DNA of 64,000 bases from Selaginella moellendorffii (taxonomy: Eukaryota > Plantae > Lycopodiophyta): NCBI RefSeq assembly GCF_000143415.4, contig NW_003314317.1:1164164-1228163 (forward strand), given 5' to 3'. A model generated the notes under the pieces. It saw only the letters and a program-made list of their open reading frames with translations, was not told the origin of the DNA and ran no database searches. This document shows, one piece after another, positions 2,250 to 17,259 of the stretch. Each line of letters starts with the position of its first letter. Positions within the stretch are counted from its first letter, which is position 1. The position numbers and the translations under genes were made by a program.

Positions 2250-2581
2250 TTAAGACTTGCCGGCTGTCCGAAGAAAGCGACCGCGCGTGCCAGAGAAACC
2301 GATTTATTTCGCCGACTTACAACAAGTTGCAAAAGCTCGACAGTATCGTCAGTTATGGATGGAATGAGCCAAAGGTACCAATTCCTGCGCAGCGACAATA
2401 TCAGTGTGAGAAGGAGCCAAGCCAAGCTTCGTAAGTCTTTAACTTTACAGCTAGCAGGAAAATGTTTCCGAGTCCACCGATGACTGCACATAATGAAGAT
2501 CGCTCTCCCACCAAAAGCCTCCAAAAGCTTGGGCCAGTTGATATATAGTACCTTGCAGCAAAGCACCGCTCCCACGCAGTG

Positions 2582-4123
2582 ATGGAGACCCTCAAGTTCT
2601 TGCTGCTGCTCTCGTCGTTCCTGACTCTTGCAAGAGCTGATCAGCAGCAGCCATGGGTATGGCTGGATCCAGATAGTGATCTCGAGCAGAAACCACGGCT
2701 TTCTTACCGATCAACCTGGCAAGGTGACAGGATAATGGATTTCTCCGCGGTTGGCTACCGAGGTGGGATGGATCCCATTCCCCCGGCTCCTCCAGTGAAG
2801 GTAACGTTGTTTCCTGGTGGTGGCGGCAGCAGCGACGACACAGAGGCGCTGCAAGCGGCAATAAACACCGTGTCTGCCATGCAACCAGACGAGCAAGGAT
2901 TCAGAGGGACTGTAAAACTTGCGAAAGGGACGTTCAACCTCGGTAAGCAGTCCATAGTGATCAACACCAGCGGCGTCATTATAGATGGCAGCGGCGTAGA
3001 CCAAACGCTGATCGACGCACACTCTCTGGAGGCCCAAGTTTTGTTCCGGATCCATGGAAATCCTGCGACGACAGTAAACAGCACACGGTCAGCTGTTGTC
3101 GAGACAGTTCCTTCCGGGAGCAAAACTCTCCGGCTAAGTTCAGTAGCAGGCTTCTCCGAGGGAGACCAAGTGAGTATTACCTGGACTTGGAGCCCCCAGT
3201 GGATCCAGATGATGAACATGAGCGACTACTGGCGGCCGGGATACGGCTACAAAGCCGAGCGGATCATAAAGACGGTCTCCACACTCGACTCTTCCATCCA
3301 GCTGGATATCCCTCTCCCGTTTCGACTGGACACGAACTACCTGGACGACGCTCACGGCGCAAGCGTCGAGAAGATATCCACAGCCCCCCGCATCGGCCGA
3401 GTCGCCCTGCAGAACTTCAAGGCGGTGAAGAACATCACATTTCCAGGCACGGGATGCTTCCTAAAAATGCAAGACGTGGAGGATGCGTGGATAACCGACC
3501 TGGAGCTCCACGACTTCAGCGGCACAATCCTGAAATACCCTAGAGAGTTGCTCCATACCTCGATCGCCATCGCTGGGACGAGAGTCACGGCCCAGAACTT
3601 GGTCCTGCACCGCACCGCGAACGCAACAAAGGGGCCGAAACCGTTCGACATAGCTCTCCACCGTCCTGGACAGCAAATACTCGTGAGAAACGTCACCGTA
3701 TCTGGGAACAGGGAATACAGCTTCATTACTGGAGACAGCATCGCCGGCCCCAACGTCTTCCACAACTGCACCGGATTCGGAGCCAACACCGCGCAGCCGC
3801 ACATGAGGTTCGCCACTGGACTGCTGTACGACAACCTTCGTATACCAGACGGTGGCATCGAGATGATAAACCGGCGATGGTTTGGAAGCGGCCATGGCAT
3901 TGCCGCCGCCTTCTCCGTTGCATGGAACACGGAGAGCAAAAGCTTGCAGGTGATCAGCTCTCCCGGGGCTGCAAACTGGGCGTTAGGATGCCGAGCTCAA
4001 GAGGTGAACGACAAGATACAAGGGATAAGCGAACCTGGATTCGTGGATGCGGTCCTAGATCCACGTATTCCCTCGCTTTTCCTGGCTCAGCGTCACGCTG
4101 CCGGCATGCCGGCCGTCTTCTAG
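2582..4123 (+). CDS. Secreted intronless pectate-lyase-3-like / right-handed beta-helix protein of bacterial type
   Basis: 513-aa ORF from ATG 2582. Signal peptide (METLKFLLLLSSFLTLARA). Motifs DFSAVGYRGG, DDTEALQAAIN, GFRGTVKL, QPHMRFATGLLYDN, NRRWFGSGHG, PSLFLAQ. TATA-like gatatatag at ~2541. Confidence 0.75.
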   Translation: METLKFLLLLSSFLTLARADQQQPWVWLDPDSDLEQKPRLSYRSTWQGDRIMDFSAVGYRGGMDPIPPAPPVKVTLFPGGGGSSDDTEALQAAINTVSAMQPDEQGFRGTVKLAKGTFNLGKQSIVINTSGVIIDGSGVDQTLIDAHSLEAQVLFRIHGNPATTVNSTRSAVVETVPSGSKTLRLSSVAGFSEGDQVSITWTWSPQWIQMMNMSDYWRPGYGYKAERIIKTVSTLDSSIQLDIPLPFRLDTNYLDDAHGASVEKISTAPRIGRVALQNFKAVKNITFPGTGCFLKMQDVEDAWITDLELHDFSGTILKYPRELLHTSIAIAGTRVTAQNLVLHRTANATKGPKPFDIALHRPGQQILVRNVTVSGNREYSFITGDSIAGPNVFHNCTGFGANTAQPHMRFATGLLYDNLRIPDGGIEMINRRWFGSGHGIAAAFSVAWNTESKSLQVISSPGAANWALGCRAQEVNDKIQGISEPGFVDAVLDPRIPSLFLAQRHAAGMPAVF

Positions 4124-4221
4124 TCTAGTCTGGCCTCAGCTCCATAGCCAGAGCTTCCGTCTGACTTTGAACTTTCATAATCGCCCTGGATCTCATCATA
4201 CCTATGACGCGTCCGAGTCGG

Positions 4222-4309
4222 ATTGATGGCAGAAGAATAGAGAGCACAAGCACCCAAAAGCCTCTCTAGAGCTGGTGGCTGCTGGTGCTCCCTGTCTTCT
4301 GTCAACAAT
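4222..4309 (-). ncRNA. MIR156: MIR156-family precursor; mature UUGACAGAAGACAGGGAGCAC (4285-4305)
   Basis: The minus-strand 5' arm matches the miR156/157 consensus. The 3' arm GUGCUCUCUAUUCUUCUGCCA (4227-4247) pairs with it, and the stem extends outward. Confidence 0.9.
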
Positions 4310-6900
4310 AGATCCATACCAATTTTTTGCATCTGGAGAGAAAACGAAAGAAAGAAAAAAAAAGGACAAGAAACCTTGACATTCTGAGAAGCGAAAAAAC
4401 TTATAAGCCGGATAAAGTTTTAAAGCTTATCTGATATAGTTCACATCGGACCGTCGATGTGTTCCGTCCAGCTTACTTTCCGAGTTTTTGGCTCCAGCAT
4501 TGAGAATAGTTAGTTGATTGGCCCAACTCCCAAGGGATCAAAGGACAAGTCGTGGAAACCACTAAAGAGGAAACAACAAAAAAGCTCAGACCTCTTTGAA
4601 GCGGTCAAAGACTCCGACCCGGCGCCATCCTGTGAGCTGCCTGTCCTTGCCAATTTTGCTAGCTTCAAAGGTGGACAGAAGACTATTTCCTCTTGCCTGC
4701 ACAAAAACAAAGTGAGAAATGTTTCAATCTCGTCAACACTAGACTAGCCTCCAAGTGATGTCATGGTTGCTGACGATTGATCAAAGTTAAAACTCGTGGT
4801 TGCTGCTGCGACAGTACTCTGCTATTCTGCATTAGCTTCAGTGCTGTTTGTTCTCTGAAAGAAGCTTAAAAAACGCCACCTACAAGCTGCCAGAGGCCCT
4901 GCTCTGCAACACCGTAAAATCATTTATGTATACCAAAACAAACTCCTCACAAGTCTCTCAGCACATACGGGAGACCGGACGGTCGAGGCAGGTTGATAGG
5001 TAACACCCATGGCCATGTGCAGACGGGACTCCACCAGGCAACTTGCGATTTGAGACAAAAACGGTTCAGCTTCCAGCAAAGAATTGCAATTTAAACATTG
5101 TTAACTTACAGACAGGAAGGCACACTCCGGCTCCGTCTTGCAGACTAAGATAATCAAAAGATAGCCGAGCTGAATGTTTCCGTGATTGTCCTTCCTGCTG
5201 GTAAACATCCAGATATTTTAAACCTGTACGATTTGAACCAAAATGCTCCCACCTTGAGTGGCTGCACGTTGGACATCTTTTCTGGGTACCATGGCAGTCT
5301 TTTGCGTAGTCTGAAAAGAAACGCATCTCAATCATGACTTAGAATTTACCTTGAGCAAGTCCATTTTTTGTGAACACTTTCGTTTTCGGAATAGTTTCGG
5401 GGGTAGCTCGCTCCTGATATTTCCGAAAGAGAATTCTTATCTGTCATCTTAGAGCTTAGAAGTAGGATTTGATAGCTTGAATTCGAGGTTTGCAGATCTG
5501 AACAATATAGCACGATCACAAACAAAGAAGGTATAGAAAAAGGACAGCGCTATCTAGCGAAAAGTGCTGCACCTGGAGGCAAGGTTTTGTCTTTTCGATA
5601 ATCATTTCGATATTATCGTTGAGCTGCAATTAGTATAATATGGTGTTTTCGAATAATTTCCACTTTCTACAGATTGTACCTTATAGAAAGGCATCACTGA
5701 TATCAGGAAGCAACATTTGAATCTCTGTGTGATTTTGAAAAGGAAGTGCACAATATAATTCGACTGAAAACGCTGTTTAATTAAATGAGAAGTTAAGCTG
5801 CCCCAACCCATTGTCTCGACGAAAAGCAAAAACTGTGTAATCTAGATTGCAAATCTGAGAACTCAATCAGTTTCCAAAATTCTGTCAAAATCAACATAGT
5901 AAACTCAGGACTTCATAGCTTTGTCAATACCAAAATGCAGAAAACCTGGAGCGGTGTAGTTTACAAGTTCGACAGCACCACACCACCGAGTTCATCGATA
6001 ACAATAATATCAGCAGGATCCTAGAACTATGGCAAGCATGACAGTTACGGCAAATCACACCTTTTCCGAGAGTAGTCTTTGTGGATAACTGGATAACCCC
6101 GGATAAGATTAGAGAAGTCCAAATTCCTGATGTGACTGAGCTGCAGAAACATCTCATGAGATCAGAAATAACAGCTGTATATAGCGAAGAGAATTACCAC
6201 AGGTTCTGCCCGAGTACTTATCCAAGAAAGTTTACTCGAAAACTCGTCTGCATATCTAGAACGGATTTCCTGCAAAACGTTTCAAAGTTTGCAAAGGAAA
6301 AAAATTGCGTTCTTAGCCAATCCAGTTAACTAGATTCCCATACCTTTTTCTTCAAGGCAAAATGCATTACAAGTGAGATTTGAAGCACCACTACGTGTTC
6401 AAAAAACGGGACTTACGCTACCGATGTTCATCTTAAATGTTGATTCTGAAGACCACTTTAGAGACCTGAATGCAAGAGGAAAACATTGATAGGTAAGATT
6501 TTTCTGTAGGCAATGGTGCACAGCTAACGAGCTGCTGACTCTGAAATCCGTGTTTGCACGATACTAGTTGCCAGCGAATGTTCAAATATATCTTCGCGTA
6601 GAATGCATTTACCTGCAAGCATTCAGTCAGAAAACTATTATGATAGTGGTCGAATTCTACCGCTCGGTATGTATCTGACCGGAAAAACTCGCAGCTGGTG
6701 TAGCAGCAAAGTTAACACAAGCCTGGCCATGAAGTGACCTGAGATAAATAGTTCTGAGAGAAACAACAGCGAAACTTACAGGTATTTCTGGATCAGTCCG
6801 CACCTATCAGCCTTGTTGGAAAATGTCAATCAATCTGCTTCTCAGCGAATGCCTGAAAGTGAACTTCGAATAGACAGGAAAGAACGCGGGCAATTACGGA

Positions 6901-6993
6901 CAGGGACTCCCGACAGAAGAAAAAGAGCACGCATCGAGGCTGCAATCAGAGGCAGTGTTCATGCGTGCTCTCTTTCTTCTGTCTAGAGGCCTG
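6901..6993 (-). ncRNA. MIR156: MIR156-family precursor; variant mature UAGACAGAAGAAAGAGAGCAC (6965-6985)
   Basis: Near-perfect stem between 6912-6934 and 6961-6983. A G:U pair favours the minus strand. Confidence 0.8.
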
Positions 6994-8840
6994 CTCGTCG
7001 CAAAACGAAACTCCCCTCAAGAGGCATCCAAGGATGCTCCAATTCCAAATCTGAGAGAGATGTGAGACGGATCATATGAGAACCGAAACCCTACCAGTAA
7101 AATTTATTGAAGAGCTCATCATTGAAGCAGAAAATACGGTTCAGCTGGGACAGGTCTTCCGCATCGCTCCAAGCAACACTGACCAAAGACTGGTCGATTG
7201 CTCTCGGAGAAAAGACGAAAATATTCCGTACCCTGCGTAATAAAAACTCATTGTCAATATATTATGAAGTTGCTTTACCATGATTAATCCGTCTTCCCTC
7301 ACGCGATCAAGAGCTTCTGCGAAAACAATTAGAGCTTCTGACTGAACTGCTCAAGAGCCTCTTGATGTGAATACAATGAAGCGATCACCACTGCTATCAA
7401 ACTCATTGAATTTTTCTTTTGTAGATCTATGCCTGCTTCAAGAAACAGTTAGAAACACAAGCTATTGCAAAATAGTTCTGAAATGTAGATTGAGCTGCAC
7501 AGAATATCAACACCGGATTTCACGTTCGTATCTCCTCAGAAAATCTGTCCATATCGTCGGTGATCGCATAAAGTATCGCATACTTGTCCCTGCAGATCAC
7601 GAAATACATAAAACGTGTGTACTGGGATCGCCCGCTTTTCGTCATGGCTATTAAACCGCACTCACCGGCCATAGTCTCAACCTGTGATCATCTGTCAAGA
7701 GCTGTGCTCCAAGTGCCTTGCACGGCCAATGCTGCGCTGACAATTATACCCTTTGAAACTGTTGCTGGTTGACTGCTGCGTTATGTTGCTCCGAATGCAT
7801 GTGTGAGGTTTTGACATCCACGCAGCAACTGCCAGAAATTGTTAGAAAACGATACGCTTCACTACATAAATATCCATATAACCCTCAGTGGTGTCATTCC
7901 TTGTTATCGGTACTACTATAGCCGAAAATAGAGAGTAGACTCAGATGGATCGGAAAAGAAAACGCTGCAAAGAAATACAACAAGAAGAAATGTCCCCAGA
8001 TGAAGATTGCGAATCTGCCAAGCTACTGAACTCCTACCTGTTGAATCCTTATGTTCGCTTATTTTGCGCTCCACTGGTAACGATAAAACCGATGCTAAGA
8101 ACGCAGTATTCTCCATCAACGGACATATTTACCACAACCTGCATTCAATGGAGGTTAACCTATTAGAGGCAATCAAGTTTGACTTACCCATGGCAATGCT
8201 GAAGACGTAAGAAAGCACGCATATACATACAGTGCGTGTTCAAGAGAAACTTTAGATCTTGATGCGAAAAACATTACTGCAAGCCACATGAACGGCAACG
8301 AAAAGCCCCGCATTCTCATATTCAAATATTAGCCCGGCAAACCACACCCGAACTCAGACCAGACAATGCGTGAAATGATCACGTTGCTGACCTTTTGTCA
8401 TAGATCGATCTGCTCGCCATTTGTAGCTCAGGTTTGGTGGCAATCAACACCTTTAGCGCTTTTATCCCTTTCCCTTCACAGTTATTCAAGCCAGAGGCAA
8501 CATCAAGAGCATACACATTTGTTAAATTCTTACACAGGCCTCGTTCTTCTTTGCGGATTAATGGAAAATGAATATAGGAAAAAACACTCATGAAAAGTCC
8601 TCGCCAAACAAAACGAAACTCACCGATTCAACCGCCAGATCGCACGCGACACCGCCCATGTCCCGTGCGTTGAAGCATTTCCTTTGCCACATATTTCACG
8701 TACTTGATCCAAACTGACGAGCAAGCACTTGCAAGAGAGGAAAAAGAAAAGCCTTCAGTGCAACAGTCATAGGATACCTTCCATGCATTCCTCGTGTGTC
8801 TTGAAACAGCGCCTAATGAGAGCGAGGCCTCAGAAGTTGC

Positions 8841-8928
8841 GATATGACAGAAGAAGAAGAGCACGCATGAGTGACACACTAGAACCAACGGCGTGCAGCC
8901 AAATGTGCTCTCTTTCTTCTGTCAAATC
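8841..8928 (-). ncRNA. MIR156: MIR156-family precursor; mature UUGACAGAAGAAAGAGAGCAC (8905-8925)
   Basis: Minus-strand miR156/157-type 21-mer pairs with GUGCUCUUCUUCUUCUGUCA (8845-8864); flanking GAU/AUC pairs extend the stem. Confidence 0.9.
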
Positions 8929-9617
8929 AGTCTCCTCTAACTGCAAGCAGATCGATTCTCAGCTTCACAAAATCTCGCCAGGAAATTTCTCGTCTTGCTC
9001 TTCCACACACCACGCAAAGAAATCCATCACCAACACCAACACCACACCGCAAGCAGACGCAAGATCCACAAGAAAGAGACCAAGAAATCAGCAGACAGCC
9101 GCTGATCCACAAGAATTCGAGCGCAAACGCCAGGAATCAATACGCGCGACCTGCATTCCACCACAAAATTTCGGTGGCGCAGCAGCGGCGCTGACGATCC
9201 CAGCAGCAATAGCGGCGCCATACCGGCCAGCGGCGCGGATCTTGCGACTTTGATCGAGGACGATGTGAGAGATGCTCGCGTCGGCGCCCTTCTTTAGCGC
9301 AGTTCTTCCCGTCGATAAAGCCTTTCTCCACTTGCATCACAGAAACCCTAGTTTAAAACCCACCGTGTCACACTAACAACCATACATCCCGTTGCGATCT
9401 AAGTATATTCTGTCCGGCGTAATTTGGAGGACTGTCCTTCAAGTGTACATTTTTTCCTTCGCGAAATCCCTGCTTGTACTTGAGGTGTGCTTTCCGCCGT
9501 GGAATGGCCAAACGAATTCCAGCCCTTGGATGCGAGGCATCCAAGGGCGCAATCTATGCTAGATCTGAGTCGTACACGTACACACGGTGGGAGAGTTTGA
9601 ATTTGAATTAAAACACA

Positions 9618-12089
9618 ATGTTTTTAGGGCTGTTGCCCATGCTGGGGCATGGCGGATTGGAGCTCGGGAATCCGGCTCCTGGATCCCGGTACAGGACCCG
9701 CGGAGAGATCGCCGTGACGATCGGCGCTCTCAAGGTATGCTCGGGGGATTTAGAACGGGGTAAGATGCTTCATCTCGATGCGATCGAGAGTGGGATTCAC
9801 ACGCACCCTCACGTCGCGGCGGCGCTGGTGAGCATGTATGCGAGGTGTGGGAGCTTGGCGGAGGCGCACAGGGTTTTCGAAGAGATGCCTCGGCGTAATG
9901 TGGTCTCTTGGAACGCATTGATTCAGGGGTATGCCGAGAATGGACAGGAGAATTTGGCTATGGAATCGTTCGTGGTAATGCAGGACAGGGAAGGACTTTG
10001 TCCGAATTCTCAGACTTTTGTGGCGGTTCTCAAGGCTTGCACCAACATGGCAACTAAAGGAGAGAGAGCAGGCGATGGGGTCTCGGTGAAAGAACAGGCT
10101 TTAGAGAAGGGGATGGCGCTTCACTCTCACGCAACAGTCAGTGGATTCGAGTTGAATGAGTTTGTGGCGAACAGTCTTGTGGAGATGTACGCGAAGTCTG
10201 GAAGCATGGAGGATGCGAGCCGAGTTTTCTTCGGGATGAAATCACGGAGCGTCGTTTCGTGGACTGCTATGATACTTGGTTTCGCAGAAAATGGTGAAGA
10301 AGAACTTGCTCTGGAGCTGTTCGACCTCATGCTAGAGACTCAAAGTTGCCGGCCAGATGCGCTTACATTTGTTGCTGCTATCAAGGGCTGCACACGCTTA
10401 GCTATCAAGGAAGAAGGGAGGCTGATCGGGAAGAGCCTTGTCAAAGTCACAAGTCTGGAGAAAGGCAAGATCGTCCACACTAGAGCTAGAAACAGCGGCT
10501 GCCAGTCGAGCATTGTTTTGGAGAGCGCACTTGTGGACATGTACTCGAAGTGTGGCAGCATGGTGGATGCACGAAGGGTCTTTGACAGCGCGAAGTGTCA
10601 CAACGTTGTGTCCTGGAACTCACTGATACAGGGATATGTCGAAAACGGGGAAGAAGATTTGGCTCTTGAGTCACTCCTTCGCATGCAAGCGGAAGAGAAC
10701 TGTCAGCCAGATGCTCGCACGTTTGTCGCAGCTTTTAAAGCATGCGGTGGCTTGGCGGCGAAAGAGAATGGCAAGAAGCTGGACGATCTTCCAAAGCTGG
10801 TGAAGGTTCAGTCTCTAGAGAAAGGCATGGCCTTGCACGCTCGGCTGGCAAAGAGCACTTGCGGCCCGGACGTGTTCCTGACGAATACCTTGGTAGACAT
10901 GTACGCTCGGTGCAGAAGCATGCAAGACTCTCAGAAGGCATTCGATCAAAGTTCCCATCATACTACAGTTTCGTGGAACGCCTTGATTCTTGGATACGCA
11001 GAAAACGGGGAAGGCGAAGCTGCTCTCGAGTTTTTTCAACAAATGTTAGCAGCAGGGGAGTGTCCACCGGATTGTCTCACGTACGTTGCCGCGCTCAAAG
11101 CTTGCAACACCGTAGCAGTGACGGAGAAACAACTTGTAAATGGTAAGCCACATAACTGGAGATCACTTGAGACTAAATTTGCTATCCACTCGCATGCCTG
11201 TGCTCACCCTGACGTGTTTCTCGCCAACACACTTGTGGATGCTTATGCGAGCTCTGGAAACATGTTCGATGCTCGCAGGGTATTCGAGAGTATGAACTTT
11301 CGTACTCTTGTTTCCTGGAACACTCTATTGCATGCATATGCTGACTGCGGGCAGGTAGAAGAAACTCTGGAGCTGTTTCCTTGGATGAAGAAGGACGGAT
11401 ACAGGCCAGATTGTCGAACTTTTGCTGCTCTACTCAAGGCCTGTGGACTCTTGGTGACTTTGAGTATTGGGAAAGCAGTCTACAGAGATATATGCCGAAG
11501 TGGTTTCGAGGACGACATGGTTTTACTCACGGCATCGGTGGACATGTTTGGGAAATGTGGGAGCATGGCCGAGGCACAACATATCTGCGATTCTAGCACA
11601 AGTTCTGAAGTTGTGACCGCACTAGTAGTCGGATACAGTCGACAAGGAGACGTTGGACGTGTTTTGGGCCTGTATCATCAGATGAGGGACGAAGGTGTGA
11701 AGATCACCAGTAATTGCTTCGTGTCAGTTCTCGCTGCATGCAGCCACGGTGGCCTCGTTGAAACCGGCAAGAAGATTTTCCGGACAATGACCTCCCAAGA
11801 GTTTGGAATTGTCCCGGGAATGGAGCACTACGTCTGTATGGTGGATGTCCTCGGCCGCGCTAATCAACTCGACGAGGCAGTCGAAATGGTGAAGAGGATG
11901 CCTTTCGACGCAAACGCCATGATCTGGATGACAGTTCTTGCTGCATGCTGCAAGTGGAACAATTTGGAAACTGGAAGGCTGGCCTTCGACAGATTGGTCA
12001 GTTTAGATGCAAGCAACGGAGCAGCTTACACCTTGATGGCCAACCTCTGCAAGAACAGTGATCACCAGGAGCTTTCGAATCACCAGTAG
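9618..12089 (+). CDS. PLS-class PPR protein (E-type, no DYW) with extended L motifs
   Basis: 823-aa intronless ORF; repeated LVxMYAKCGS...[10 protein letters not shown] triplets; [12 protein letters not shown] and [10 protein letters not shown] (S2/E1). Confidence 0.92.
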
Positions 12090-12400
12090 TCACCGCAAGA
12101 ACAGGTACCATTCTCAAAGTTATGGAACCTGTATCCATCACGAACTATGATTTCTCGCTGCAGCAACTTGGAGAAACTTGGTAGCTGGAAGGCTGGCCTT
12201 CGACAGATTGGTCAGTTTAGATGCAAGCAACGGAGCAACTTACACCTTGATGGCCAACCTCTGCAAGAACAGTGATCACCAGGAGCTTTCGAATCACCAG
12301 TAGTCACCGCAAGAACAGGTACCGTTCTCAAAGTTATGGAACCTGTATCCATCACGAACTATGATTTCTCGCTGCAGCAACTTGGACAGAAACTTGGTAG
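11971..12400. repeat. ~215-bp tandem duplication of the convergent PPR/PPR-DYW junction
   Basis: ctggaaggctggcc...aacttggtag occurs at 11971-12184 and 12185-12400, nearly identical (copy 1 has a 2-nt deletion). Confidence 0.95.
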
Positions 12401-15215
12401 CAGTGTGACAATCCGAGCAGACACGCAAGTTCTTCATTATCCTAATCGGCGTCCCCGGCTCACAGGCGATGCTTGCAAACGCTATGGCGAGCTTCTCGCT
12501 ATGGTAACTCAGCAACACCTCCTTCTCCTCGTCCAGGACGCTGTGAAGAACAGCCTTGGTGTCCGGCTGGTAGCCGGCCTTCTTCATCAACTCCTGGAGT
12601 CTGCTAAGCTCGGACAGAATCTCCTGGTGCCGGGGATGCGAAGCCTCTCCAGCAACGAACCTGTGAAGAACGCCGTCGACTCTGATCAAGCTCACTCCCG
12701 GCTGCTTCTTCACACCCCGAGCTTTCATCCGGTTCCTCACAGCAAGCGCATCGGCCACTCGACCAACGGAAGAGTACATGTTGGCCAGAAGAACGTAAGG
12801 CCCGGAGCTCTGATCATCAAACTGGAGCAAGCTCTCGGCAGCCCGGGTTCCCAGCTTCACGTCACTGTGAGTTTTGCAAGAACCAAGCAATGATCCCCAG
12901 GCTCCAACGTCGGGGATAAACGGCATGGTCTCCAGGAGCTCTCTGGCCGCTCCGAGCTGCCCCGCGCGTCCCAAAACATCCACCATTCGGCAGTAGTGCT
13001 CTCGCCAAGGGATCAAACCATGGTCTCCTTGCATGGAAGTGAAATGCGTCCATCCTTCCTCGACCAGGCCAACATGACTACACGCTATCAAAATTCCCAT
13101 GAAGGTGATATGGTCGGGCTTGGCTCCTTCGTTCCTCATCACGTACAAGTACCGTACTGCGGCCATTCCGTGGCCACAGCTGGCCATACCAGCAATGAGG
13201 GAGTTCCAGGACACGACGTTTCGGTACGGCATTTTGGCGAATAGCTCTTGGGCCTCCGCGAGGCGTCCGTGCTGGGCCAGCATGGCCACCATGGCCGTCC
13301 ACGTCACGGTATCTTTCTCGTCCATGGAGTAGAATATGCGCCTTGCCTCCGCGAGGTCCATGTTGTGGGCATATGCCACGACCATCACGTTGTGTGAGAC
13401 GACGTTCTTGTGTGGGATCGAATCAAAAATGGACTTCGCCTCGTCAAGATTCCCGGCTTGGGCATATGCCGCGACCATGGTGTTCCACGAGACCAGAGTC
13501 TTTTGCTTGATGCTATCAAACATCGCCTTTGCGTGATCGAGCATTTGGGCGCTCGAGTAAGCCTCCATCATCGCATTGCAAGCTATCACGTCGGGGTTCT
13601 TGATTGAATCAAACATCTCTCGCGCATCTTTGATATACCCGTTTTGGGCATATGCAACGATCATGGATGTCCGAGTGCTTTGATCTGGATCCGGCAAGGT
13701 ATCGAGCATCTTTCTCGCTTGGACGACCTCCCCGTTCTGGCTGTAAGCGATGATCATGGCCGTGTGTGACACGCGGTTTCTCTCGGGCATGAGAGCGTAC
13801 ACTCGCTTGGACTCGGTCAGCTGCCCGTTGACTCCGTACGCCTGGATCAGAGCCGTCCATGCCACGAGATCGCGCTCCGGAATGAGGTCGTACAGCACCT
13901 CCGCCTCCTCGAGCTGCCCGTTCTGGCCGCTGACCGCAATGAGAGCCGTCCACGCCACGACGTCGTGACGTGGCATTCTCTCGAACGTGGATCTTGCCAG
14001 GTGGACGTGCCCGGCCTGGGCGTACGCCGAGAGCAGCGCGTTCCACGACACCTCCTCGCGGCGTGGCATCTCGTCGAATATCCTCCTTGCCTGTCCGGGC
14101 TGAAGGCTCTGGGAATATGCCGCGATCATGGAGTTGAACGCCACCACCCCGCGCTGGGGCATTTTCGAAAACGCCAGCTCAGCTTCCCGCGCGCCGCACT
14201 TGTGGGCGTACGCTCCAATCAGCGCGTTCCACGACACGTCGTCTCGCCGGGCAGCCCTGTCGAATATCCTCCGCGCCTCTTCCACAAGGCCATGGCGCGA
14301 GTAGGCCGAGAGCATGCTCGTCCATAGCGTGGGATCTTGCTGGGGCATTCTTCGCGAAAGATTCTCGGCCTCGCCAATCTTCCCCTGGTCGATGTAGATC
14401 TGGATCATGAAGCTGTAGCTCACGGCGTTGCGATCGGGCATGGCGGTGAAGATCTCCACGGCGTGGCCGAGGATCTCCTGGACGGCACAGGCCTTGATCA
14501 TCAGCGTACACGACACGATGTCCTGCTGCGGCGTTCGATCGAAGAGCTCCTTGGCGGAATCAAGGTCGCCCGACTGGGCATAGGCGGTGAGCATTGCATT
14601 CCAGGAGATTTTGTCCCTCCCTGGCGCGCGATCGAACACGCCCTTGGCCTCTGGGATCATCCTGTTGTCGGAGTATCCAGTGATAAGCGCGTTCCAGGAG
14701 ATTACGTTGTGTTCGGGCGTGCGATCGAACATCGCGGTGGCGCCGGCAAGATCCCCGCTCTGGGCGTAGCCCGTGATCATGGAATTCCACGACGAGGAGC
14801 TCCAACGCGGCATCCTGGCGAAGATCTCGTCGGCATTGGACATGAATCCATGCTGCGAGAAGCCGGCGATGAGGCTGTTCCAGGAAACCACATTGTGGGA
14901 AGGGATTTGGTCGAAGATTGCCTTGGCGCTGCCAAGATCGCCATTCTCGGAGTAAACTTGCATGAGGATACAGCGTGAGAAGACATTGGGCTCGGGCAAT
15001 TCATTGAACACCGCCTGTGCATCATCGATCCGGCTACATTTGCCATACATTTGAATGATCAGATTTTGGAGGAATAGATTGCCCCGGTGCTCCCCATCCG
15101 CGATCTGGTTGTGGATCTTTCTACCCTGTGCGAGATCCTTAGCGATGCCACACGATCGTATTGCTGTGGCTAGTGCGTTCTGCAGCTCCCTGACCTGTGT
15201 TTTCAGCAAGGACAT
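12294..15215 (-). CDS. PPR-DYW organellar C-to-U RNA editing factor
   Basis: Intronless ORF of ~31-aa SS-like repeats; PG box (KKQPGVS), HSEKLA, CSDCH and terminal CSCGDYW all intact; first ATG at 15215. Confidence 0.96.
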   Translation of the reverse strand: MSLLKTQVRELQNALATAIRSCGIAKDLAQGRKIHNQIADGEHRGNLFLQNLIIQMYGKCSRIDDAQAVFNELPEPNVFSRCILMQVYSENGDLGSAKAIFDQIPSHNVVSWNSLIAGFSQHGFMSNADEIFARMPRWSSSSWNSMITGYAQSGDLAGATAMFDRTPEHNVISWNALITGYSDNRMIPEAKGVFDRAPGRDKISWNAMLTAYAQSGDLDSAKELFDRTPQQDIVSCTLMIKACAVQEILGHAVEIFTAMPDRNAVSYSFMIQIYIDQGKIGEAENLSRRMPQQDPTLWTSMLSAYSRHGLVEEARRIFDRAARRDDVSWNALIGAYAHKCGAREAELAFSKMPQRGVVAFNSMIAAYSQSLQPGQARRIFDEMPRREEVSWNALLSAYAQAGHVHLARSTFERMPRHDVVAWTALIAVSGQNGQLEEAEVLYDLIPERDLVAWTALIQAYGVNGQLTESKRVYALMPERNRVSHTAMIIAYSQNGEVVQARKMLDTLPDPDQSTRTSMIVAYAQNGYIKDAREMFDSIKNPDVIACNAMMEAYSSAQMLDHAKAMFDSIKQKTLVSWNTMVAAYAQAGNLDEAKSIFDSIPHKNVVSHNVMVVAYAHNMDLAEARRIFYSMDEKDTVTWTAMVAMLAQHGRLAEAQELFAKMPYRNVVSWNSLIAGMASCGHGMAAVRYLYVMRNEGAKPDHITFMGILIACSHVGLVEEGWTHFTSMQGDHGLIPWREHYCRMVDVLGRAGQLGAARELLETMPFIPDVGAWGSLLGSCKTHSDVKLGTRAAESLLQFDDQSSGPYVLLANMYSSVGRVADALAVRNRMKARGVKKQPGVSLIRVDGVLHRFVAGEASHPRHQEILSELSRLQELMKKAGYQPDTKAVLHSVLDEEKEVLLSYHSEKLAIAFASIACEPGTPIRIMKNLRVCSDCHTATKFLSKLLQREIIVRDGYRFHNFENGTCSCGDYW

Positions 15216-17259
15216 AGATTTCAAAAGCTAAACCCGGTTGATCCATATTATGGATAAAGAAAAGGTGGTAATATAAACTAATATATTTCCTTACTGAATT
15301 TTTAAGAAATAGTAAATAACTTTTTTTTCTCTAACTTCAATTAATAATATCATATTTATCTAAGTAAAAGATAAAATATTTTATGGGTTACTAGTAATGC
15401 CTGACAAATACTGGCTGGATAAATAAGTTTTAACTAACCTTGGAATTTAGATTTTAATTAATAATAAAATATTAAAATATGGAAACAAAAGAATTGGAAC
15501 TAGCATGGGACAATTTTAATAATGTATTGCATTTTATTAAGTTTTATTTACTTAAGTTACTTGTTGTTGCATGCACTTATGCTTAGAGGCTTACCATTCC
15601 TAATCTCGATCCTCATGCTAAAAGTGTCAATTCTAACATCTCATCAACTTGATATGCATGAGATTAAAAACAAAAGTTATTATCATTCCATCTCTAAGAA
15701 AAAGAGAATATTTTGCATTGATCCTTTAACTTGGTTCATTTCAAACAACACTCCATCACCTCTATTACCCCCGCCCCCCCCAGATAGATGCTCTAGATAA
15801 CAAATTCTATCAAGTGAAGAGTGGCCATTGGCTTAAAAAATGTTACTTGTATTAAACACCACATATTATCTTGTGATATGTCATTGATGTGACACTTTGC
15901 TATGTGGAAAAAACATTAAGAAATATCAACCAAAAAATGTTATTTATATAGTGGCAATACTGAATCAAAAGTTGAAGTAATCCACATGTCATTTGGTTGC
16001 TATAAGAATGTTGTAAAAATGCATGTTAAAAGAAAATTATATACTTGTAAGTAGATGTAATTCCAATGGTAGATGTTGCATGTTCGTGTGAACTGGAAGA
16101 GTGTTAGTATGATATAGACATTAGCGAACTCTTTTACAAGAGTATTTGATCATGATATATTAGTTAAAAGAGACAAATAAAAGAAGTAAACATACCACTA
16201 ATATCAAGTATGTTATTGGAATTTTATCAATTGTAATGCAAATTAAATTGTCATTTGAAAGTAAAAGTGTAATATACCACTAATGTCAGGAGTGCCAAGT
16301 TCACATTAACTATAGGGCAAATTTGATTAATCAAAGAAGAAAACAATGTATGAACCATTAGATTATGCAATCCAAGAATATTGTGGTGCTTGGTGATAGT
16401 AGGTTTTGTTACAACATAGTTCATAGTTATTTTTATTTTTATTCCTTGATATAGCATGCTTATAATGTTATAGATAAATTTTGATTATTATAAGTTTAAG
16501 AATTGGCTATATATATTGTCAACCTTGTGAACTAGTGATGTAGTAGAAATATAGTCAATTGCATCATCACTTGAAGACAACACATATACTTTCCATTATT
16601 GGAAAAACAAAGAACTTTAGGAATGTTGAAAGTATAAGAAATATATCATCAATGGAGCAAATTCATGTATGAATATAAATATGTTACATAGAAACAACCA
16701 ATAGAAATAATGCAGCTTGTCTATGAGAGATGAGGTTGTATTAGTACAAACATAATTTTATAAATTACAACTAGGGAATGTATCTAGTGTTATTATATAT
16801 AGGTATATATAGTTTCTAGAAAGGCTCAGTTCAATGTTTTAAACAAAGCTTGGTTGGTATACAAGCTCCTTAGGTTTCTCTGTAGCCTATCATTTCTAGA
16901 AAGGCTTGAAAAATTAGTGTTTTAAATGTCATGCATGCTCACTAATAGCAATTGGTAGAATGCCATGTTTTCTTCCTCCAATAGCACACCAAGGATCAAG
17001 GAACATAAATAGTAGCAAAGGAGCTAGCTATGTTTGAGCATTCCATCTATAAAAAAATAAAGAATAAATTTATATCCACCTTACTATGTAAAAGGTGGCA
17101 CAACTCTTTATCATTCTCCAAGAAACCTTTTAACACTAATAAATTGGATGAGCATAAATTTTGTGGATAGAACAATAGAGTTAAATCACTCTTGTGCAAC
17201 AAGAATATTAAAGGATTAAACTACCACTCATTTACCTAGAGAATTGAATTTGTTTTTAA

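Follow-up and report, generated by a model that had tools for sequence, protein, structure and literature searches.

The question raised by a 64,000-nucleotide stretch of the Selaginella moellendorffii genome (contig NW_003314317.1, positions 1,164,164 to 1,228,163; hereafter the window) is whether it contains a cluster of microRNA (miRNA) hairpins of the MIR156 family, and whether these hairpins are carried by one RNA. Among the developmental-timing modules of land plants, miR156-SPL is the most conserved; data on the organisation of its genes in lycophytes are thin. Here, we describe three MIR156-type hairpins, called H1, H2 and H3 in the order of their positions, that are real and far beyond chance. 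H1 and H3 are two genes that already have names, smo-MIR156d and smo-MIR156c, while H2, which lies between them, is an expressed paralog with an off-register product. H3 and H2 very probably belong to the same spliced non-coding RNA.

A search of the window with the 20-nucleotide (nt) miR156 sequence, allowing at most three mismatches, gives five matches, and the same search in 100 shuffled sequences gives none. Three of the five are miR arms, all on the minus strand, at 4285-4304, 6965-6984 and 8905-8924; the other two, on the plus strand, are the star arms of H2 and H3. The 21-mers that correspond to the mature miRNAs have their 5' ends on the minus strand at 4305 (UUGACAGAAGACAGGGAGCAC, H1), 6985 (UAGACAGAAGAAAGAGAGCAC, H2) and 8925 (UUGACAGAAGAAAGAGAGCAC, H3), giving start-to-start distances of 2680 and 1940 nt. 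All three regions fold into stable stem-loops whose 5' arm holds the miR156 sequence. H1, H2 and H3 reach fold energies of -46.7, -61.4 and -46.2 kcal/mol (z -4.65, -9.87 and -4.58), and no shuffled sequence is as stable. An earlier note on this DNA, made from the letters alone, had proposed three minus-strand MIR156 stem-loops about 2.6 and 1.9 kb apart and had suggested folding each of them; the 21-mers, the folds, the spacing and the family matches given below all agree with it.

H1 occupies 4226-4305, with the miR in the 5p arm at 4305-4285 and the star arm at about 4246-4224. H3 occupies 8844-8925, with the miR in the 5p arm at 8925-8905 and a lower stem of 15 nt below the cut. H2, at 6910-6985, has an uninterrupted stem of 23 base pairs (bp), one of them a G:U pair, and its lower stem reaches to about 7001/6895; the stems of H1 and H3 do not show such full pairing. 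Inside the mature strand there are three unpaired positions in H1, one in H2 and two in H3, all in the 5' arm. This agrees with what is asked of a MIR156 stem-loop, in which the miR/miR* duplex may have up to five mismatched positions, up to three of them asymmetrically bulged (Axtell & Meyers, bioRxiv 10.1101/213314). When 7 kb are searched with the Rfam model of MIR156 (RF00073), H1 scores 35.3 bits (E 1.8e-4), H2 41.1 bits (E 4.9e-6) and H3 40.1 bits (E 9.3e-6). These matches cover the full length of the model (positions 1-88), and on 64 kb their E-values are 1.7e-3 to 4.4e-5. A permissive MIR156 scan of the whole window shows no further locus. For both H2 and H3 the second-best Rfam family is MIR535, at about 31 bits.

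As a small-RNA reference we used You et al. 2017 (Genome Biol 18:158, PMC5569507), namely Tables S4 and S6 and the FASTA file; what is said below about published small RNAs refers to these parts of the study. The mature sequences given there are CGACAGAAGAGAGUGAGCAC for Smo-miR156a, CUGACAGAAGAUAGAGAGCAC for Smo-miR156b, UUGACAGAAGAAAGAGAGCAC for Smo-miR156c and UUGACAGAAGACAGGGAGCAC for Smo-miR156d, and the sequence of smo-miR156c is given alike in PMC3602245 and PMC2826338. In Table S6 the 21-mer of H1 is identical to Smo-miR156d and that of H3 to Smo-miR156c, so that the mature sequences of H3 and H1 show no difference from smo-MIR156c and smo-MIR156d, the miRBase names as quoted in that study. 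H1 and H3 are these named genes, which agrees with the earlier note, where the outer two hairpins are said to resemble annotated Selaginella members. The small RNA of H3, UUGACAGAAGAAAGAGAGCAC, is listed with 138 reads. For H1 the listed small RNAs are UUGACAGAAGACAGGGAGCA (584 reads, 156d) and the 156d variants UGACAGAAGACAGGGAGCACC (12 reads) and ACAGAAGACAGGGAGCACCAG (46 reads). Each published small RNA of the three hairpins maps once in the window, on the minus strand and to its own hairpin; the H1 reads match there with their flanking bases.

Transcription was studied over 3850-9800 using two stranded RNA-seq runs from 2026 (X21 and X22) and contigs from two older runs (X4 and X8, probably RNA). 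In all X21 and X22 read pairs over 4248-9421 the first mate is on the plus strand, while in all pairs over a control, a plus-strand PPR gene (9621-9800), it is on the minus strand. Since the first mates over the hairpins are on the plus strand, opposite to the control, the RNA here comes from the minus strand; no plus-strand RNA is seen. Together with the direction of the GT-AG introns this settles the orientation of the cluster in the way first proposed. The reverse complements of H1, H2 and H3 also fold well, at -47.0, -60.5 and -40.5 kcal/mol, and H2 reaches 40.9 bits for MIR156 on the plus strand. We nevertheless reject a reading in which the hairpins are made from the plus strand: between 4450 and 9420 the stranded RNA-seq contains no RNA of that strand, and only when read on the minus strand are the introns GT-AG.

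H3 and H2 are found in a spliced non-coding RNA that runs on the minus strand from 9421 to 5840, with ends known only to about 100 nt. Its exons are 9421 (a tentative start) to 8188, 8138-7666, 7589-7514, 7432-7279, 7232-7095, 7050-6780, 6722-6661, 6612-6344, 6269-6198, 6140-6111 and 6026 to about 5840. H3 lies in the first exon, where an X4 RNA contig covers 8704-9090 unbroken with the hairpin inside, and H2 lies with its whole lower stem in the sixth. Of 13 joints listed on 3850-9800, 11 are GT-AG when the minus strand is read; the acceptor at 6198 is used by two of them, with donors at 6140 and 6135. Ten joints fall between 8186 and 6026 and one more at 3968/4035, and ten of these eleven introns are GT-AG. 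The model of the host RNA has ten short introns of 44-84 nt, nine of which are GT-AG on the minus strand. We conclude that H3 and H2 in all likelihood share one spliced non-coding primary miRNA transcript of about 3 kb.

We reject a coding host gene. The spliced model is 2966 nt long and its longest open reading frame (ORF) starting with ATG has 73 aa; ten ORFs of 61-89 aa on the minus strand of the host region were compared with Pfam, as was a 174-aa plus-strand ORF at 8729-9253, and none gives a match. Another candidate that we rejected is a joint at 8727/9150, seen in one X4 contig, which skips 422 nt including the whole of H3. It has non-canonical ends and only 24 nt on one side, and is probably an artefact of assembly or of reverse transcription at the hairpin. 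The depth is lower in the bins of H2 and H3 than in the neighbouring exons. Such dips fit with excision of the hairpins, and they could also come from poor reverse transcription of strong hairpins.

The situation at H1 is different in that no joint was found between its RNA and the exon chain above. The transcript segment that bears it is traced over 3850-4332 on the minus strand; an X8 contig runs over 4321-4035, then over 3968-3850 and then for 297 nt beyond. Downstream of H1 this segment contains a 66-nt GT-AG intron (3969-4034), whose joint 3968/4035 is found in seven and two reads, with the first mate on the plus strand only, and also in both X4 and X8 contigs. Just 3' of H1 the minus-strand depth in X21 rises about fivefold, from 1.2 at 4248-4446 to 6.4 at 4049-4247. 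The H1 transcript runs antisense into the last 270 nt or so of a plus-strand ORF at 2579-4123 that is itself transcribed. The ORF and the RNA from MIR156d at 3850-4195 on the minus strand thus converge as a sense/antisense pair, over 350 nt or more.

Between the H3-H2 unit and H1, over 4333-5839, there is only low-level minus-strand RNA, with a depth of 0-1.4 compared with 2-4 in the upstream exons. Coverage falls 3-10 fold past about 5840, none of the four runs covers the bin 5442-5640, and 5840 is not bridged to 4333 by any joint in these runs. Upstream of H1 there are two motif-level hints, a TATAAG at 4405-4400 and a pyrimidine tract followed by CAG that ends at 4333; judged by its motifs, this sequence is compatible with either a promoter of its own or a splice acceptor. 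The interval could be a long intron, or it could be transcribed by read-through or as the beginning of a primary transcript that belongs to H1 itself.

We give somewhat less than an even chance to the idea that a single primary transcript, running from about 9.4 kb to below 3.85 kb, carries all three hairpins, with 4333-5840 as a long intron or a weakly retained segment. One strand is used throughout, the low-level minus-strand reads together with X8 contigs at 4483-4659 and 4786-4943 fill most of the interval, plus-strand RNA is not seen in it, and no transcript end is detected near 5840. Further, the pyrimidine tract and CAG at 4333, only 27 nt upstream of miR156d, resemble a 3' splice site. 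However, the drop in depth after about 5840 and the empty bin speak against it, and junction reads were recovered for every other intron, yet none for a 5840-4333 joint. An intron of 1.5 kb would also be about 20 times as long as those of the host RNA, and the TATAAG could serve an independent H1 promoter. The earlier idea of a single polycistronic transcript thus survives in part: H3 and H2 lie in one spliced minus-strand exon chain from 9.4 to 5.84 kb, and no joint to it was found for H1. In a search of the literature we found no description of a MIR156 polycistron in Selaginella.

The middle hairpin differs from its two neighbours in what is cut from it. Two small RNAs of PMC5569507, neither of which carries a miRBase accession, map in the window to H2 alone, both on the minus strand: UCUAGACAGAAGAAAGAGAGC (no. 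2351; 157 reads) at 6987-6967, its 5' end being 6987, and CAGAAGAAAGAGAGCACGCAU (no. 2348; 36 reads) at 6981-6961, its 5' end being 6981. One 5' end accounts for about 81% of the H2 reads listed. The dominant species, UCUAGACAGAAGAAAGAGAGC, begins 2 nt 5' of the predicted mature sequence UAGACAGAAGAAAGAGAGCAC, and UAGACAGAAGAAAGAGAGCAC, the canonical register, is absent among the small RNAs reported in the parts of the study used here. Of the three mature sequences proposed from the letters alone, those of H1 and H3 are exact and that of H2 is off, as the published major species lies 2 nt further 5'. In the canonical register H2 would differ from miR156c by one base, a U-to-A change at position 2. 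H2 is an expressed MIR156 paralog with an off-register product, and the 2017 study gives it no miRBase name. Our literature search gave no paper that names a smo-MIR156e or a fifth smo-MIR156, and none with the H2 sequences outside the supplement of PMC5569507.

Both H2 candidates are described in Table S4 as 'mapped in genome 2' (PMC5569507), and we would read the two genome places as two assembled haplotypes. In the same study Selaginella uncinata has a small RNA, CAGAAGAAAGAGAGCACGCGU, with 257 reads, that is one base away from the minor H2 product CAGAAGAAAGAGAGCACGCAU. This hints that an H2-like locus, and the register of the minor product, may be conserved within Selaginella.

The shift of 2 nt can be compared with the geometry of the stems. 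When about 190-200 nt around H3 are folded, the 5' end of miR156c lies 15 nt above the base of the lower stem, and 15 nt is the usual distance in base-to-loop processing by DCL1. For H2, whose lower stem is continuous, the distance from the stem base is 14 nt for the observed 5' end and would be 16 nt for the canonical register. A ruler of 14-15 nt from the base of the lower stem would thus plausibly explain the shift, because the observed end is at 14 nt and the canonical end at 16 nt. The star strand predicted as partner of the -2 register is UCUUUUUCUUCUGUCGGGAGU.

Whether H2 does anything is a separate matter. It might be a degenerating inverted repeat, or one that resembles a source of small interfering RNA (siRNA), and not a functional miRNA gene, with products that are by-products without a target. 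We consider this rather doubtful, although several features speak for it: the fully paired 23-bp stem is atypical of conserved MIR156 genes, the products come in two registers 6 nt apart with the canonical one missing among the reported candidates, the canonical register carries the U-to-A change at position 2, and neither candidate has a predicted target or a cleavage site in the degradome data of Table S4 (PMC5569507). On the other hand, the 157 reads of the main product are comparable to the 138 of miR156c, the 5' U is retained, the listed reads concentrate on one 5' end, and the small RNA of S. uncinata suggests that locus and register are conserved. The opposite possibility is that H2 is a functional, so far unnamed gene of the MIR156 family which has diverged by a shift of the dicing register and not by base substitution, so that the seed of UCUAGACAGAAGAAAGAGAGC has moved by 2 nt, while CAGAAGAAAGAGAGCACGCAU, in a register close to that of miR529, appears to be conserved in S. 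uncinata. This we regard as improbable; if it were true, and one of the two products were loaded into AGO and cleaved mRNAs of SBP or other genes at the shifted positions, H2 would be a living example, within a polycistronic lycophyte host RNA with many introns, of how a MIR156 hairpin can give rise to register-shifted sisters such as miR529.

In an alignment of the three loci the similarity is confined to the miR and star arms, and the flanks are unalignable. On the star side there is one further piece, AUGCGUGCUCUU, that H2 and H3 have in common. From this comparison the three hairpins look like old duplicates, with H2 and H3 nearer to each other than to H1. A covariation alignment of the three sequences misaligned the star arm of H1 and is uninformative. 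That the hairpins are three independent genes, each with its own promoter and terminator and clustered by old tandem duplication alone, is quite unlikely: most plant miRNA clusters of one family are reported as independently transcribed (PMC4860694), no single molecule with two hairpins is seen and the flanks do not align, but the coverage from H3 to H2 is on one strand and unbroken, it includes five GT-AG introns in a row, no signal of a start or an end is found there, and H2 sits in an internal exon (7050-6780) with spliced junctions on either side.

What the products target is known in part from published degradome data. SBP-gene peaks are assigned there jointly to miR156a-d and variants of these; those in Smo12796 and Smo9403 include miR156c and miR156d, and the H2 products are not listed (PMC5569507, Table S6). 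The earlier note had proposed that the variants from the cluster differ in their SPL specificity. This finds no support, because miR156c and miR156d share the same SBP cleavage peaks and the H2 products are off-register and have no predicted target or cleavage site in the tables of that study. The simpler reading would be that miR156c and miR156d are a redundant source of dosage, and H2 could be neutral, decaying or a register-shifted novelty.

Put together, we consider it likely that this is the smo-MIR156c/smo-MIR156d locus with a third paralog in between, all transcribed from the minus strand, with a bicistronic H3-H2 host and an off-register H2. The RNA that starts about 200 bp from a divergent PPR gene would then probably be a bicistronic primary transcript of H3 and H2. 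H1, 1.5 kb further down the minus strand, would either have its own promoter or depend on the upstream unit through read-through or splicing. A DCL1-type enzyme would excise the 21-nt miR156c and miR156d in the canonical register, and these would guide cleavage of SBP/SPL mRNAs, as in the published degradome, in a largely redundant way. H2 would be cut mainly 2 nt further 5', giving a seed-shifted isomiR with a 5' U and no demonstrated target. In this scheme the data show the hairpins, their strand, the splicing, the identity with 156c and 156d, and the presence and register of the small RNAs from H2; we infer three parts, co-transcription of H3 and H2 on one molecule, processing by DCL1 and functional redundancy.

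A number of observations weigh against the scheme. H3 and H2 are never found together in one read or contig; what connects them is a series of overlapping contigs, reads across junctions and same-strand coverage that has no gaps but a low depth of 0-4.5x. No transcript start or end is detected in the RNA data of 3850-9800. The joint 6026/6111 in the host model, a skip of 84 nt, is non-canonical (AA..AG on the minus strand), and yet it is found in all four runs. The expression criterion for a miRNA gene asks for miRNA and miRNA* of 20-22 nt, with a precision of 75% or more in two or more libraries; 5p reads are published for H1, H2 and H3 alike, but star-strand reads of the three hairpins were not found among the small RNAs listed from the supplements of PMC5569507. 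The Rfam scores of H1-H3 (35.3-41.1 bits) are all below 62, the gathering score of RF00073; a default Rfam scan at the gathering threshold gives no match, and the hairpins appear only with an E-value threshold. It should be kept in mind that this score is a curated cut-off and not a biological criterion, and that the loops of H1-H3 are shorter than that of the model. Finally, H2 could be decaying or siRNA-like, given its fully paired stem, two registers and lack of a target. As to the joint 6026/6111 itself, the skip could be a deletion or indel between haplotypes, or an unusual intron.

Clusters of homologous plant miRNAs are well established, and tandem MIR156 hairpins on one transcript are described in grasses (PMC2812943, PMC4860694). 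The H3-H2 unit resembles Osa-MIR156b-c of rice and miR156b/c of maize Corngrass1, where two miR156 hairpins lie in one non-coding primary transcript with one promoter (PMC2812943, PMC4860694). In contrast, the rice hairpins lie within 541 nt in an unspliced precursor (PMC4860694), while H3 and H2 occupy separate exons, with 1.9 kb and five introns between them. Further, the second Selaginella hairpin yields an off-register product, unlike those of the grass tandems. The lycophyte arrangement very likely arose independently of that in grasses.

A second comparison is with MIR529 and MIR535, the sister families of MIR156. Between miR529 and miR156, 14-16 nt are common, but the register of miR529 lies further 3'-ward; the two target an overlapping 25-nt element in SPL genes (PMC4739381). 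The minor H2 product, CAGAAGAAAGAGAGCACGCAU, begins one base before the miR529 register. However, the best family match of H2 is MIR156, with no match to MIR529, its 3' tail is GCAU where miR529 has AGCCC, and the major H2 product is shifted the opposite way, 2 nt 5'-ward. With MIR535 the likeness is limited to the second-best Rfam matches of H2 and H3 mentioned above. Selaginella is not mentioned in two papers on the evolution of miR156 and miR529.

With respect to earlier work, two named miR156 genes of Selaginella are here shown to be physically linked, over 4.6 kb. At least two MIR156 hairpins on a heavily spliced non-coding host RNA would extend tandem miR156 transcription beyond the grasses. 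H2 offers a concrete case for how the geometry of the lower stem may set the DCL1 cut, and how shifts of register may make new members, which is the question posed by miR156 and miR529. In general this is a modest addition to a known kind of gene cluster, and it does not overturn current understanding.

The hairpins lie in a stretch of 5.5 kb without long ORFs. On the H1 side of this stretch, the plus-strand ORF at 2579-4123 encodes 514 aa with a weak match to the pectate-lyase-like Pfam family PF12708 that is below threshold (20.1 bits, cut-off 27); as noted above, the plus strand is transcribed here. On the other side there are two PPR genes, both intron-less, that converge. The first, at 9618-12089 on the plus strand, encodes a protein of 823 aa of the E-motif type, and the second, at 12294-15224 on the minus strand, is an ORF of 976 aa of the DYW-deaminase type. 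The 823-aa protein, encoded at 9618-12086, is found exactly in a public protein collection, in a cluster where all other members bear the name of S. moellendorffii; these include shorter models of 513 and 231 aa, and the annotated model of this gene may be split.

The gap that separates the MIR156c host RNA from the divergent PPR gene is about 240 bp long and has four GTAC cores (9445-9578), with a tandem CGTAC...CGTAC at 9571-9581. Of all 240-nt windows in the 64 kb, only 1.2% have at least four GTAC. SBP/SPL proteins bind a GTAC core, and on this motif-level hint a site for SPL feedback in the gap is conceivable.

Some X4 contigs end in sequencing adapter, at 4195, 8237 and 9652, which points to many fragments with identical ends. 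We considered the end at 4195 as a remnant of DCL1 cutting and rejected this, as it lies 28 nt past the predicted cut of H1 at about 4223 and similar ends are found at the two other, unrelated places.

Of the RNA reads over 3871-9683, about half reach no more than 95-99% identity with the window, and some 37 variant positions are listed. None of these falls inside the three hairpins, where about 1.4 would be expected by chance, a difference that is not significant. The pattern of variants fits a second haplotype or strain.

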